From NCBI RefSeq assembly GCF_963853765.1, contig NC_088857.1:19344001-19408000 (forward strand): 64,000 nt of DNA. The letters run 5' to 3'. The position numbers and the translations under genes were made by a program. This document shows positions 56,578-63,690 of this stretch, in pieces (within the stretch, counting starts at the first letter, position 1; every line of letters starts with the position of its first letter). The notes beneath the pieces were generated by a model. It made no database searches. It was not told the origin of the DNA and saw only the letters and a program-made list of their open reading frames with translations. This DNA comes from Magallana gigas. Lineage: Eukaryota.

Positions 56578-58628
56578 ATGTCCTATACCGCAATAATTCT
56601 CTTAACTGTTCTCTGTGCTGCAAAAGCTGATTTTAGAAAGTAAGTGTATTTTATTAATCAAGCAGCGTGATCGAAAAAAGTTGAGTGTCAGCACAACGCA
56701 CTCATGTTAAAACACTTCAAACAATGTTATCGTCATTAAAAAATTAGAGCAATAATTCTTTTTTACTAAATTTGCCCTGATGAATCACTTTGAACATGTT
56801 GGATTCAAAACATGTATTTACTTCCACTCAAAACCGTTATCGAAAGATCTTTATACATCTTTTGCCTTTTGTTTTATAACTCAAAAGATTACTCATGATA
56901 AATACAGATTAGCTAGTAATCGTACTTTTACACATCCATTCAAAATTAATTTCGAAGTCAATATTTATTTTGTTCGCCAGAAACACGCCCATTTATACTT
57001 ATGATGGTCTTATTACTCACCTCACAAATGGAGCCCGTGTCATGTTTTTCTTTAACGCGACAACCTGTCAACCTATTTCCCAGACAAGAGTTTCCGACCT
57101 TCCAGTGTTTGGAGGGGAAATTAATTTTTACTTAGCTTCAAAAAGTTCTGATGATACTACTGGACAACTGATTTTTAATCATGATGGTTACGCGTTTGAT
57201 AATACCAACGAAGATAACCATCAAATACAGTAATTCATTTTCATCTTAACTAACAAACAAACGAGTGGTAAAAAAAACTTTATCATAACAGAAACACTTA
57301 TATACAGTTGTTCAATTTACTTCCTTTTATAATACCTTATATTGGTTTGTTTGATTGTGCATTATGCTAAATGCAGCGCTAACCGAAGAGATACAGTCCG
57401 TCTACATTATGAATACCACCGCGTTTATTCTCTATGGAAGCCTAGGATTCTTTGCCAACAACACAGACAACGTAAAAGGTGTAATTTGCGATTGGTCCTC
57501 TGGAAAAGGAAAGTGAGAAAATAATCTTTTTTTTAGCATTTATTTAGTCTTATTTAGTGACACTATTTTTAATGAAATGATTAAACGCTTCCGAATAATT
57601 AGTAGAATTAATACTATTAAATTCATAAAAAGCAATATTGATAAGAAAATGAAAATTGACAGGAAACAAACATAATTAAATAAACAATTAATAGTTTGTC
57701 TATAGCAAGCCTTACTTTAAACTATCAAAATATAATAATTTTTATCACGAAAAATATATACGAGTGGCATGTTTATAGGAAGTATATATAAGTCTTTGTT
57801 GGTTTATTTGGAATTCATGTTCTTGCAAATTGACATAAAACTTACGTTATGCTGAACATAAATATGAAATAAGCGGTGATAACAAACAGTATTAAAAATC
57901 AATAGTCTATTTATAAATGCAGCAAATTCTGGGTAGAGAGCAACTAACTCCACGTCATCTCAACTCTTCCGAACAAATTCGCACGATGCTGGTTATTGGC
58001 AATCCACTTCGATTTGCCATAGTACTTGATGGATGTCAATGTGTCAAGGGCAATTGTGGGCATAGCTATATCGGAGGAAATATAGCGGGTATATTATTTT
58101 ATTTATGCATTTAGAGTTAATTAACTTCTGATCAAAACGCTCCATCCACGATTTATTATTTTTGTTTATAATGGCAGATCCATTAGATGCTAACATTTGA
58201 TTAGAAAGATTTAGATTAAACTCTTAGAACAACTTTTTTGACTGACAGTGTATAAAGATTTCTCAACTCTAAATTTAAGAAATCTTTAATTTTGTCCAAA
58301 AAACCTTCCATGTTTACGATAATTAAATAATATTCATATTTTAGGCGAGAAAATATCAACCGATGGCACAATATCTTTTTCAAATGCCATGACATTGTTT
58401 CTCCCTAATCCAGCATCACCGATGTCTTTTCGCGAGCTTCTGGTTGGAAGCATTCATAGCAACAATACCATAACATTAATGTTGTCCTATGAAAAAATGC
58501 CAACTCCAGATATCTTGACGCGGTCAGGAGACATGCAGATTTTTTTAGTATTGAATAACATAGATAATATTTTGACATGTCATATTAACTATCATGAATA
58601 TAATAAATTATATTTTCAAGATCTTTAG
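56578..58628 (+). pseudogene. Secreted two-domain VirK-like protein, copy 1, probably splice-defective. Exons 56578-56639, 56981-57213, 57377-57512, ~57923/57937-58088, 58345-(58522 or 58628)
   Basis: Signal peptide MSYTAIILLTVLCAAKA; exon phases agree with copy 2. The exon-2 donor is AT where copy 2 has GT. Exon 4 frameshifts if the stronger acceptor at 57922 is used. Confidence 0.7.
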
Positions 58629-61600
58629 TCCATTGAATATTGAACTTTACCATTTCAAATCCGTTTTAGTCGTGTGAAATGGTACAACGTTTTCTTTCAT
58701 TGTGAAAAAGAGGAAGACAAAAAAGAAATCAAAGCCTTACATGGCATCTGTAACATTTTAACATAAGAGGTGAAGTTTGTACAATAACTGAATAGGATTA
58801 CATTTTCATTCTTTTGGCTTACAGGAGTTACTGTTCTTCATAAACGTTTGTTGTGATAGGGAAGCAAGCTAAACCATCCAAAATAAATAAATTATCTATA
58901 TAATACTTTGATCAACATTGTTTTAACCTATTTAAAACATGAGAAAGTAACTGGTGAACAAACAGAAAATTATCATCACATATGTCATGCATTTATTGCA
59001 ATAAAATTTTATAGTAAAAGCGTATTCATGAAGTGTTCAATTAAGCAGATATTGGGAATGCAAAACTTATTACGTCAAATTTTTAAAGCATTCAAATTAA
59101 TATACGTAAAATTGTGAATAAATAAAATAAATATTCAAGAAATCTGTCAGTAAATCATAGCTAATCAGCTCAGTTTTCTGACAGTTTTAAAATGTTTAGA
59201 TTGATAATAACATAACATTTAATTATCAAATTGCAATGAACACCTATTGACTGTAAAGTGACATAATCCTGTCTTTTAATCTAAGAAAACTGAAAGACTT
59301 TGTAGGCATTCTTTGAAAATCGCTCTTTTTAAACAGAAGTTTAATGTGTTTTCTCGAGAGATTTTACAAAGAAGGCTTGTTTTATATGTTACACGTGCAT
59401 TGATACCATATCAACTTTTTGTGATGTACATCACCTCAAAATACATAGAAGCCAGCCACATTATATACGGCATTTTCTGCCTTTTATTGTTGCTTAAAGT
59501 AAGTCTATCATCAATATCAAAATCAAATTACAACTGTTGAATGAAAGATGCTATAAAAACAGCATGTAATATTAAGGACATCGGTAGTCCTTTCTTATAT
59601 TGTCCTAATAATGTACATGTACTTATATTCTTAATTAAGGATTGTTTGCATATATTTATGGAATTTTATTTTTTTAAGATTTCTTTTTCAAATGAGCTAT
59701 TTAAAAATTTAATTAAGCTTGTACTTTAAACCACATATTTAATTTAATCTTAAAAATGTGTATGCCTGACATGCAAACAAAACGTTTCCTAGTCCTTTTA
59801 AGCTTTTTTTTCCAAGTAAAATCAGATCTTTCGATTCTTGTACAATTTACTGTAGAAAAAAATGAGATAAAATTTTAATGTTGAAAAATAAAAACATTTG
59901 AAGACGTCAAAGTAATTTTAGTATCAATATCATCAACAACAAAAAATCATTATCATTCACCTAAAAATGATCGTTGATATTTTATATTGAATGGTATTCT
60001 TTAGCTTATCTACGAGGGTTATCAGAAAAAAATCGTGGACAAAGTGATTTACGACAAAATTACTTTGTACTTTGTGGGATGGCGTATGTTTTATTAAATT
60101 ACTGTCAATTGAAAGTAAGTGTGCAAAATTCATATGAACTAGAATTTAAAAAAAATGATACAGCGATTATTACTTTAATGAATTAGATTTACGGAGCACC
60201 ATTTCATATTTCCGCGATGTTAGATGACGTCAAACAGCTGAACGTCAAACCTGTTCATCTTTTTCACCTTTCACCTCCACACACTTTTCAAGAAGTCATT
60301 TAACCCATTCGTAAAATGCACGTTCATTCCATTATTTTTGTCATTTTTGATATACTGTCTTTTGTGACATATCGTAGATCAATTCTCTGTTCACGCAGTT
60401 TCGACTTAAAGGGAAAACAGCAAATTCCATAGGTGCAATATCCAGGCTGTAAGTGTGTGTGTGTGGGGGGGGGGGGGGCTGCAAGAACTCAAAATATCAG
60501 TTCTTCCATCTTTAAACGTCTGTGATTCTAATTGTAAACATTTGTTCTGCGTGCACACGAAATTAAATGAAGGCCCGATGCTCCAAAATGTCCATTGACG
60601 TCAACGTTTTTTACTTATTTTTCGAGCGTTGTTCGTCCAAATTGGGCAATATAACGATAAAAAATTCTTCAATTTAATTGATACATTTACAAAATTATTT
60701 TCATAAGTCATTGTCATGTCATAAAAAATATCGTTTGTTTTTATGCGCTTAAACGATACATTTTCTTAATGAGGACAAATGCGTACAAAATAAAAAAAAT
60801 TAAAAATCTGACATGCTCCGTGAAGCATACTTATCAAAATAATTAAGCTGTATATTTTTATTGTGCATTTAAAAAATACAAATCTTTACTTATTTCTTGG
60901 AAAATACGTCAAGTTTGAATAAGTTTTGATTATACAAGTATCATGCGAGTAGAGTAGTCCGCTCACAATAAAACTAGTCCAAGAACTTTTTTTACAACCC
61001 TATTATGATCTTTTCACACTGTGATGAATATTCTTTATTGTCAGATATATAAATCATAAGAAGGTTGTACAACAAGATCGGCAATAATATAAAAAAATTT
61101 ACAATCACTTATTAATGCATGGAAAAAGTTAAAATTTATTAAAAATTAAAAATAAAAACATAGCAATATTTTTTTTTACTTTAAGTTTTTCTTAAGCCAT
61201 TGATATAGCGCATCTTAAAAACTTGTCAATTTATATTTTTCATCGAAATATGCTTATTTTGAGTTATTAATGAAACTAAATAAATGCAAATAATTAGGAC
61301 ATTAAACATCACCTTGTTATCAAATGAACATAAACGTCTTACAACGTTAAAAGCTCGACAAAGTATTTTTTATTTATTTTCAAATATCATTTCACCATCA
61401 AAGTTATACGTCTATACATGTACATGTATGTATTTTTCAGCAATTTTACATACTTTCAAACTCTTTTACAACATGTTACACTTCATTGTCTTCAAAGCAA
61501 ACAAAACGGAGAAAACAATCGGAAAAAATAGTAGATTTATGTAAATTCAATAAAGATTTTTCACAGATTTAAAGTTCGAATAAACAAGAGACAAATTTTT

Positions 61601-61956
61601 CGTTAAGCCCTTTGTCATTGTACATAGTTGTGTTGCAAATCTTTGGTACGAGAGCCACTGACGTCATCACAACTATTATGAACAAATTTGTACGATGCTA
61701 GTTAATTGTAATCCATTTAGATTTGCCATCATTCTTAATGTATATCCCTGTTCAGTATTATGCAATCGTTGTAAAGGTTATAATGGAGAATATGTACCAG
61801 GTTTTGTATTTCGGTTTTCTGTGCTCATAAGGTACAATTTAAACTTCGATTAACAACACATTATATTATCTACACAAACTAAATTACTAATTATGAATCA
61901 GTATTCAACATGTTCCATTTGGTTATAAACCAAACACATATCAACATTGAACTTAA

Positions 61957-62565
61957 AGCTGCTTGGTCCGATTTTTTTGTAATTACAGTATCAATTTTTT
62001 TTTCATACAAATCATTTATCTTAGAAAGTTAAGGACTTTCTCCTATTTACACCAGCAGAATCAGTCTCCTTTCAAAGTTAGAAATATTCAAAGTAAATAA
62101 AAATAATTTCTCTTTGGGCAAACGAAAAAACAAACCAAAATGCATCACGGGAATGTTTAGAAAAGGAAACCGCTTGGTTTCGTCCCCCGAATGATTGGGG
62201 TTATTCAACCCGCATGCTATGCATCGATTGTAAAGAAAGCAGACTTTAGAAATATTAGCGAACAAAACGTACACATGTTTATTTGTAATTTGTCTGATCA
62301 TTTCGACCTTTATTTAAAGCGATGTCAAATTCGTAATACAACTATACCCGTCTCGTCGTCAGGGGTGAAATTTAATATACGAAATAACAAGGTACCTTTT
62401 AATGTCGTTTGTTTTGTTAGCAAATTTTGTACGTATTTTTCTTCATTGACATTTGGCATAATTGATGGGTAAAACTACTTCAATGTCTATTATTATACAT
62501 ATACTAAGCATAGCCATTGTTTAAAAGCGTGCATAAAATTTGATATAAAATCGGACCAAGCAGCT
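61957..62565. mobile_element. Kolobok-type non-autonomous element with TTAA TSD
   Basis: ttaa-AGCTGCTTGGTCCGATTT ... AAATCGGACCAAGCAGCT-ttaa. Confidence 0.88.
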
Positions 62566-62764
62566 TTAACTTCCTCATATTGTATTCGTTTTAACAACTT
62601 TTTCATTATTATTTAAAAATTTACCGTGGGTATTATGTTGTATTATGTTGTCCTACATTCTTATCGCATCTATAGATTGCAATTCACAGTTCAAAATGTG
62701 GTTCTCGATCTCTCGTTTCTATGTCTACTTTTACAAACAAATGTCAAGTTGATAAGAAACCGCC

Positions 62765-63690
62765 ATGCTCTATACGACGTTAATTCTTTTTCCCTTTCTG
62801 TGTTTTACCAAGGCTGATTTTCAAAAGTGAGTGTATTTAATCATCAAACGCAGTATAATGTTAAAAGAGTTGAGTATCATCTGACCACACTCAATGTTTA
62901 CGCACTTAAAACATATAATTGTGATACATTTTAGAACATTTTCGTAATTTTTTAAATATCATTCCATACAACATTGATCCATTCAAACATTTCGTGTATT
63001 CTCTGGAGTTAAAACTTTTTTCTACTAAAAATCTACATTAATAAAACATAATATCCTTGTCTCTTAGATTTCATTACTCAACGATAACTTACAATCCATA
63101 CAGACTAGGTTATGAAACTTCTAAATTTATGTGAATAAGCTTTGGAGATTTTTTTGCTAGAAACACGCCTATTAATACATATGATGGTCTCATCTCTCAC
63201 CTTACCAATGGAGCCCGCGTCATGTATTTCTTCAACACGACAACCTGTCAATCTATATCCCAGACAAGAGTTTCCGACCTTCCAGTGTTCGGAGGAGAAA
63301 TTAATTTTTTCTTAACCACAAAAACCTCTAATGATACACCTGGCCAACTGATTTTTAATCATGATGGTTATGAATTTGACAGTGCTAAAGAAGGTAATAA
63401 TTCGATTTAATAATCCTTTTTTAACCTGAAAAAGCAGATAAACAACAAAGAAATCATCATCATAACAGAAAAACTTACTATACAGATGTTCATTTCACTT
63501 CCCTTAATGTTTTGTTATATTGATTTGTTTTATTGCACATTGTGGCAAATGTAGCATTAACCGAAGACATACAGTCTGTCTACATCATGAATAGCACCGC
63601 CTTTATTCTCTATGGAAGACCTGGGTTCTTTTTTAACAACACTAACGACATAAAAGGTGTAATTTGCGATTGGTCCTCTGGAAAAGGAAA
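62765..63690 (+). CDS. Secreted VirK-like protein, copy 2 (partial; continues past window end). Exons 62765-62826, 63161-63393, 63555-63690
   Basis: MLYTTLILFPFLCFTKADFQK-NTPINTYDGLISHLTNGARVMYFFNTTTC...GGEINFFL...GQLIFNHDGY...-ALTEDIQSVYIMNSTAFILYG...VICDWSSGKG; all GT-AG, exon lengths identical to copy 1 (62, 233, 136). Confidence 0.85.

Follow-up and report, generated by a model that had tools for sequence, protein, structure and literature searches.

VirK is a secreted protein widespread among plant- and amoeba-associated Proteobacteria (PMC5700972, PMC6617341). As known from the Agrobacterium Ti plasmid (VirK), Xanthomonas (XAC0435) and the Pantoea plasmid pPATH (VirK), it is a single-domain protein of ~145 residues, encoded without introns, often on virulence or symbiosis plasmids, and exported through Sec and type II secretion (PMC5700972). 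Seven families of secreted proteins are enriched in phytopathogens, VirK and secreted chorismate mutase among them (PMC5700972), and on pPATHpag, a pathogenicity plasmid of Pantoea agglomerans, virK adjoins a chorismate mutase gene (L001 2935-4416). The only solved structure of the VirK family is that of Lpg1832/NttG (PDB 5XTA), a type II-secreted protein of unknown activity from Legionella pneumophila (PMC6617341, PMC7325957). Here we describe two tandem paralogs, gene 1 and gene 2, in a 64,000-nucleotide stretch of the Magallana gigas genome (NCBI RefSeq assembly GCF_963853765.1, contig NC_088857.1, positions 19,344,001 to 19,408,000; hereafter the window), and conclude that they belong to a bivalve family of proteins with two VirK domains each. 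Taken as a whole, we consider it fairly probable that this is a secreted family derived from bacteria by transfer, of which gene 1 is a decaying member and gene 2 an intact one.

The bivalve proteins, which have a putative N-terminal secretion signal where bacterial VirK has its own, share with it a domain of ~100–120 residues with the same conserved skeleton, composed of a helix with x-L-x-x-A/L-x-x-G, a V, a C, GG-x-I, F-x-I-x-x-DG-x-I-x-FS, a P/R motif and a C-terminal C. They differ in having two such domains in ~280 residues, four introns, an arrangement in chromosomal tandem arrays, conserved N-x-T sequons and two extra Cys residues in domain 2, and their identity to bacterial VirK is ~20%. 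Because they lack the single-domain, ~145-residue architecture and bacterial context, which mark the typical members but form no part of the Pfam definition of the domain, we regard them as carriers of VirK domains rather than as orthologs of VirK; the family is a eukaryotic, intron-bearing, two-domain form of the bacterial one. The Shigella and Salmonella proteins also called VirK (VirK/YbjX, DUF535) form a separate family (PMC12562796, PMC13109725) that is membrane-associated, ~300 residues long, PhoP-regulated and unrelated to the Pfam VirK family PF06903. Membership of the bivalve proteins in that family was rejected, as the 23 full-length members examined match no Pfam family other than PF06903 at E ≤ 0.001, and the name is shared by coincidence. 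The PF06903 label was already public for these proteins, so that what is new here is its interpretation and not its detection.

Domain 2 is recognisable as a VirK domain at the level of sequence, and five independent tests agree on this. PF06903 (profile length 98, gathering score 23.7 bits) matches domain 2 in 22 of the 23 full-length family members at E ≤ 0.001, a threshold reached by no other Pfam family in the same 23 proteins. The match covers profile positions 2–96 and lies above the gathering score in P0010 (29.1 bits), P0016 (29.3), P0019 (34.9), P0026 (30.5) and P0040 (31.8). Single exons of the window gave no Pfam match, as the domains are split by introns, and NCBIfam held no matching model. 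When a profile of the C-terminal 180 residues was compared with all PDB sequences, the one significant chain was 5XTA_A, annotated ‘VirK protein’ (E 0.0033), with an alignment running from the first helix to the C-terminal Cys. A tblastn search of 7.3 Gb of plasmid sequence with domain 2 of P0019 returned two matches only, both to a Pantoea agglomerans ‘VirK family protein’ at a weak E of 0.1.

The converse comparison, with a hidden Markov model (HMM) built from eight plasmid VirK genes, reached 20 bits or more on domain 2 in 15 of the 24 members, mostly across HMM positions 20–137, and 26.2 bits on the whole gene 1 model. Aligned profile to profile by hhalign, the animal domain 2 and bacterial VirK match over 118 columns with 97.2% probability (E 3.8e-11); the Cys pair, GG, DG-x-I-x-FS and Arg are in register. 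The bacterial invariants C51, G65, G66, I69, F82, R101 and C133 align with the domain-2 invariants C, G, F-S, R and C. The original prediction, made from the sequence of the window alone, had noted a resemblance to VirK and proposed profile searches as a check; for domain 2 the Pfam, PDB profile, bacterial HMM and hhalign results all bear it out.

Domain 1 is an internal copy of domain 2 that has diverged strongly. It retains the Cys pair and GG without the DG-I-FS motif, and its profile aligns with that of domain 2 at 91% hhalign probability (E 1e-6) over 60 columns; the internal repeat that had been predicted is thus real, though diverged, and the two halves have one predicted fold. Several results weigh against calling domain 1 a VirK domain from its sequence. 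Only 4 of 19 domain-1 sequences gave a match to PF06903, all weak (best E 0.049), hhalign against bacterial VirK returned a probability of 12%, and the domain-1 profile found noise only among PDB sequences. The assignment of domain 1 to VirK accordingly follows from transitive homology, through domain 2, and from predicted structure.

The AlphaFold model examined was that of P0040 from Crassostrea virginica, the closest intact homolog (identity of 53% with gene 1 and 61% with gene 2), predicted with a 23-sequence alignment. It has a predicted local distance difference test score (pLDDT) of 87.4 and a predicted template modelling score of 0.84, and the same order of secondary structure elements appears in it twice. 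Foldseek found one significant match in the PDB, which was again 5XTA (E 1.8e-5, target TM 0.80), in agreement with what the original prediction had expected of this comparison; the remaining matches of the P0040 model, at root-mean-square deviations (rmsd) above 17 Å, were discarded as noise, as were matches to binding domains of clostridial neurotoxins, to laminin G and to FABP (rmsd above 10 Å). Predicted domain 2 (residues 155–279) superposes on 5XTA in VIA-align with a Z of 13.3 and an rmsd of 1.9 Å over 116 of 120 residues, the next chain scoring 5.1. Domain 1, modelled alone (pLDDT 74) and compared with 48,161 PDB representatives without a Foldseek pre-filter, also placed 5XTA first (Z 10.8, rmsd 2.5 Å, 104 residues), ahead of a runner-up at 5.3. 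Domain 2 is 18% and domain 1 is 7% identical in sequence to 5XTA, a single-domain protein of an amoeba and human pathogen. Next after 5XTA among the structural neighbours, for either domain, come DUF4251 proteins of Bacteroides (4GDZ and 3FYF; Z 5.1–5.3 over ~97 residues); they have no sequence relation to the bivalve proteins, and Z values in this range, typical of a common arrangement, are not evidence of kinship or function.

On these models both domains appear to share the fold of bacterial VirK, and the description ‘tandem VirK-like domains’ is correct. A convergent origin, or a fortuitous resemblance to a widespread small β fold, would fit the low sequence identity (18–20%) and the want of a significant direct match between domain 1 and VirK. 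It fits poorly with a Pfam score above the curated cut-off, with the PDB profile match and the full-length hhalign alignment in which the motifs coincide, or with structural Z values that stand ~8 units (domain 2) and 5.5 units (domain 1) above the next chain, and we consider it very improbable. Homology to VirK and possession of its fold are, in our assessment, highly probable.

The reach of the family was surveyed with a domain-1 profile, built on exon 2, in an exhaustive HMMER search of 1.84 billion representative proteins. It returned 23 matches, of which ~19 look real; P0025, P0028, P0030 and P0031, large proteins with EGF, Big_2 and ankyrin repeats, were set aside as spurious repeat matches. 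Every match with a named source is from a bivalve (Ostrea edulis, Saccostrea echinata, S. cucullata, Crassostrea virginica, M. gigas or Mytilus californianus), the remainder being short unnamed fragments, and all of the bivalve matches are labelled ‘uncharacterized protein’. Word-index searches extended the family to C. angulata, M. trossulus and M. galloprovincialis, with PF06903 on record for every named match; another such search, with exon 5 as the query, returned bivalve open reading frame fragments only. All named relatives thus fall in Ostrea, Saccostrea, Crassostrea/Magallana or Mytilus, that is, among pteriomorph bivalves.

Full-length members have 256–322 residues and align end to end, as a leader followed by two modules of ~125 residues each, an architecture to which both window genes belong. 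Positions invariant across the family are the Cys pair, the two extra Cys of domain 2, GG, two N-x-T sequons, W, F-S and R. A maximum-likelihood tree resolved three well-supported subfamilies and placed window genes 1 and 2 as sisters. As two of the subfamilies hold both oyster and Mytilus proteins, the tree indicates that the family diversified before the oyster–mussel split. One Mytilus californianus protein, P0015 (LOC127724898), groups with Saccostrea at 100/99 in the otherwise oyster-rich subfamily B; its model is without two internal segments, and it may be an artefact of annotation or contamination.

We favour, with moderate confidence, a bacterial origin of the family by transfer. A single-domain, Sec-secreted, virK-like gene of a proteobacterium would have been taken up by a common ancestor of oysters and mussels, in whose genome it would have gained a eukaryotic signal peptide, four introns and the base composition of its host. 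Internal doubling would then have produced the two domains, and later diversification three or more subfamilies as well as local arrays of tandem genes. One transfer before the oyster–mussel split would be the simplest history, because all animal relatives found are pteriomorph bivalves. The alternative is vertical descent with no horizontal transfer, the VirK fold dating back to early eukaryotes or animals and surviving in patches. It accords with the age of the family in bivalves, two subfamilies being common to oysters and Mytilus, and with its fully ‘animalised’ state in introns and base composition; moreover, at ~20% identity to bacterial VirK, diverged eukaryotic relatives could escape searches. 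Vertical descent would however require many independent losses, and every relative with a named source is a bivalve, while virK is common on plasmids of Proteobacteria, with 166 plasmid records matching the Pantoea protein. We therefore regard it as rather unlikely.

Transfer, in turn, has points against it. The case draws on the absence of the family elsewhere, and the exhaustive search used the animal-specific domain-1 profile only; no non-bivalve relative appeared in the word-index searches, among which the domain-2 search missed even the bacterial VirKs. A scan of bacterial genomes by a narrow alignment returned only Rhizobiaceae (including agrobacteria), Mesorhizobium and Ewingella, a narrow set that brought no donor to light. 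The earlier suggestion of a horizontally acquired or patchily retained family is nevertheless plausible in view of relatives that, as far as they were found by sequence, are all bivalve.

The two genes lie on the + strand of the window, 6.18 kb apart, as read directly from its sequence. The region described here runs from 56578, the A of the gene 1 ATG, to 63690, the final base of gene 2 exon 3. Gene 1 has five exons (56578–58628). Exon 1 (56578–56639) carries the start codon and a predicted signal peptide, MSYTAIILLTVLCAAKA, followed by DF, and has the donor GTAAGT in phase 2. Exon 2 (56981–57213), with 233 nt as in gene 2, encodes the N-terminal two-thirds of domain 1, and exon 3 (57377–57512) its C-terminal third (..NTTAFILYG..NNT..VICDWSSGKG). 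Exon 4 (57923–58088) contains the beginning of domain 2, the VirK-proper domain, and exon 5 (58345–58628) the remainder; the peptide NSSEQIRTMLVIGNPLRFAIVLDGC..YIGGNIAG, continuing as EKISTDGTISFSNA, spans the junction between them. Gene 2 begins at 62765. Its exon 1 (62765–62826) encodes the start codon and the predicted signal peptide MLYTTLILFPFLCFTKA, followed by DF, with a GTGAGT donor that is kept in C. angulata; exon 2 (63161–63393) encodes the N-terminal two-thirds of domain 1, with the phase 1 donor GAAG/GTAATA, and exon 3 (63555–63690) the end of that domain. Exons 4 and 5, with domain 2, lie past the end of the window. The peptide TYDGLISHLTNGARV..GGEINFF..GQLIFNHD is present in gene 2.

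Within the window the duplicated exons were recovered by a repeat search at a spacing of 6180 nt and 82–83% DNA identity, and tblastn gave 57–83% amino acid identity between gene 2 and the gene 1 model, depending on the exon. The hydrophobic leaders, putative signal peptides, end in A-K-A/D or T-K-A/D; residues 4–15 of the gene 1 leader have a mean Kyte-Doolittle hydropathy of 2.59, with an A-x-A site, and most full-length relatives also have an N-terminal hydrophobic leader. All gene 2 splice sites inside the window are canonical GT-AG. GC content is 0.38 in exons, 0.26–0.28 in introns and 0.32 across the window. Given the GT-AG introns, the contrast in GC between exons and introns in an AT-rich window, and synteny with a C. 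angulata chromosome, these are animal genes and not contamination.

Between the two genes, at 61671–61802 on the + strand, lies a solitary, degenerate sequence resembling exon 4, with 57% amino acid identity to exon 4 of P0043 by tblastn. Its key residues are gone and a stop stands just upstream. It is closer to exon 4 of C. angulata cluster genes 3 and 4, described below, than to that of genes 1 and 2, and its sequence suggests a vestige of a cluster member since lost.

Synteny links the locus to part of a 57.6-Mb C. angulata chromosome where four VirK-domain genes stand in tandem (L002; CM046776.1, 19446355–19468552), with PF06903 on record for all four. The first and second of these are the orthologs of window genes 1 and 2, respectively. 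The ortholog of gene 2 (L002 5515-7497) encodes 279 residues, and that of gene 1 has exons 3–5 intact and ends in PDIEIACPIEAVRRHADFFSIE before its stop codon. Genes 3 and 4 (L002 10001-12198 and 17871-21702) arose by recent duplication and are still almost identical. Unrelated sequence replaces, in P0043, the start of the region equivalent to exon 3, which suggests that this part is divergent or mis-modelled. The earlier description of the family as intronised and tandemly expanded holds, each gene having four introns and the C. angulata locus four genes in tandem. That of two intron-containing paralogs with a repeated module stands in so far as both are present on the + strand where they were placed, with the peptides then quoted; it requires correction in that gene 1 is damaged and only exons 1–3 of gene 2 lie within the window.

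Gene 1 carries three disabling lesions relative to its relatives, the C. angulata ortholog among them, to which its exon 3 is still 96–97% identical in DNA sequence. The first is at the exon 2 donor, where the expected GT at 57214–57215 reads AT, with A at 57214 (GAAG/ATAACC, against GAAG/GTAATA in gene 2); the related copy P0009 retains GGT. An AT-AC intron of the U12 type was ruled out, as the intron starts with ATAACC and ends with cag. The second is the absence of one A near 57935 in exon 4, evident in the DNA alignment with C. angulata; with the conserved acceptor, the exon then reads NKFWVESN and ends at a stop codon at 57945–57947. The third is a 16-nt deletion in exon 5, between 58514 and 58515, that shifts the frame and takes out ..EIACPI.., including a Cys that does not vary among the aligned members, animal or bacterial; the ancestral stop would sit at 58556–58558.

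RNA depth on the gene 1 exons was nil, with no splice junction, in three contig sets and in ~1% of a large poly(A) run, which we take as weak negative evidence. In the tree, the branch of gene 1 is seven-fold longer than that of gene 2 (0.27 versus 0.037). Because of the three lesions, and of four RNA runs without coverage of it, gene 1 as assembled here is probably a pseudogene, that is, a decaying copy, or a null allele. Some observations weigh against this. The 1-nt deletion could be an assembly error, an explanation that is unlikely for the loss of the splice donor and the 16-nt deletion, and two cryptic splice sites, at 57186/57187 and 57936/57937, leave a frame of 279 residues open.

Gene 1 might on that account still be functional, producing a 279-residue protein by way of the cryptic donor and the new acceptor, with an altered C-terminal tail that is tolerated. 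Using both sites, the frame is open from the ATG to a stop and no exon contains an internal stop; the 1-nt deletion itself creates the tag/A acceptor at 57936/57937 that would hold the frame. Against this, the donor, g/gttacg at 57187 and the sole in-phase GT of the exon 2 region, is weak. The resulting tail would be without the invariant Cys, and the bacterial VirK HMM aligns to the first half of domain 2 only. The same tail carries another, different 1-nt frameshift in P0001, a related fragment. Together with the lack of RNA depth on the exons and the long branch, these features make a functional gene 1 quite unlikely, and we still read it as a copy in decay or a null allele.

Gene 2, by comparison, looks intact as far as the window reaches. 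Exons 1–3 are 97–98.5% identical to those of the C. angulata ortholog (exon 2, 97.4%), with identical splice sites. The six synonymous and four non-synonymous differences between them, small numbers drawn from three exons, together with the conserved splice sites, fit purifying selection on gene 2. Exon 3 is 100% identical over 34 residues to P0026 (UniProt K1QTH4, Magallana gigas), which continues from there into a Pfam-positive VirK domain. The K1QTH4 model, an old one, starts within gene 2 exon 3, crosses domain 2 and fuses to the next downstream family member, and is a chimeric annotation over two tandem genes.

As predicted from sequence, the product is probably a secreted protein of ~280 residues, N-glycosylated and disulfide-bonded. 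No plausible catalytic constellation stands out among the invariant positions, which are structural or belong to the secretory pathway. Copy number and integrity of the genes differ among close relatives. Secretion, a virulence-associated bacterial ancestry, tandem expansion and the decay of copies between close relatives lead us to propose, tentatively, that the protein is a non-enzymatic extracellular binding module at the interface between animal and microbe. The role in host–microbe defence that the original prediction held possible is likewise speculative. Two points weigh against such a reading: VirK has resisted decades of functional study, its function being unknown in any organism (PMC5700972, PMC6617341), and the RNA data, which covered the gene 1 exons, yielded no evidence of expression.

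A role as a shell-matrix, mucus or digestive protein is possible too, if doubtful. Secreted, lineage-restricted and tandemly expanded families of bivalves are often shell or mucus proteins, and the RNA data on gene 1 gave no sign pointing toward immunity; on the other hand, the sequences read have no low-complexity or acidic regions of the matrix type, and the literature search found no link between VirK and bivalve shell proteomes, VirK occurring in none of the bivalve papers retrieved. A more specific form of the proposed binding role is decidedly speculative, and we give it little weight. Bivalves would have captured and doubled a secreted, virulence-associated module before the oyster–mussel split and would now use it outside the cell against microbes, perhaps as a decoy or sensor with the same host or microbial ligand as bacterial VirK. 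Copies would turn over fast, with gene 1 perhaps a null allele that is segregating.

Two repeats elsewhere in the window deserve mention. At 61953–62375, an interspersed repeat of ~420 nt has RNA depths of 1e3–2e4 in all four data sets and on both strands, with sharp loose ends at both coordinates and no Rfam match. A second repeat, at 60000–61000, has moderate RNA-contig depth, many variant positions and internal skips between copies, and is probably a transposable-element family. It is because of these two repeats, and not of the VirK-like exons, that RNA runs seemed to match 7–10% of the stretch.

No paper on VirK in bivalves, or naming any of six loci or accessions, was found in a search that left subscription journals outside. 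The persistence of the domain, kept, doubled and expanded for hundreds of millions of years, suggests that the VirK fold is useful outside bacterial virulence. As a second system, and one open to genetics, the bivalve family gives another place to look for the VirK ligand and, if the decoy or sensor scenario were true, would open a new experimental route to the function of VirK itself. The integrity of copies that differs among close relatives is a pattern typical of genes at the host–microbe interface. To the biology of bivalves, these findings add a probable bacterium-to-animal transfer that has turned into a multigene family of secreted proteins.

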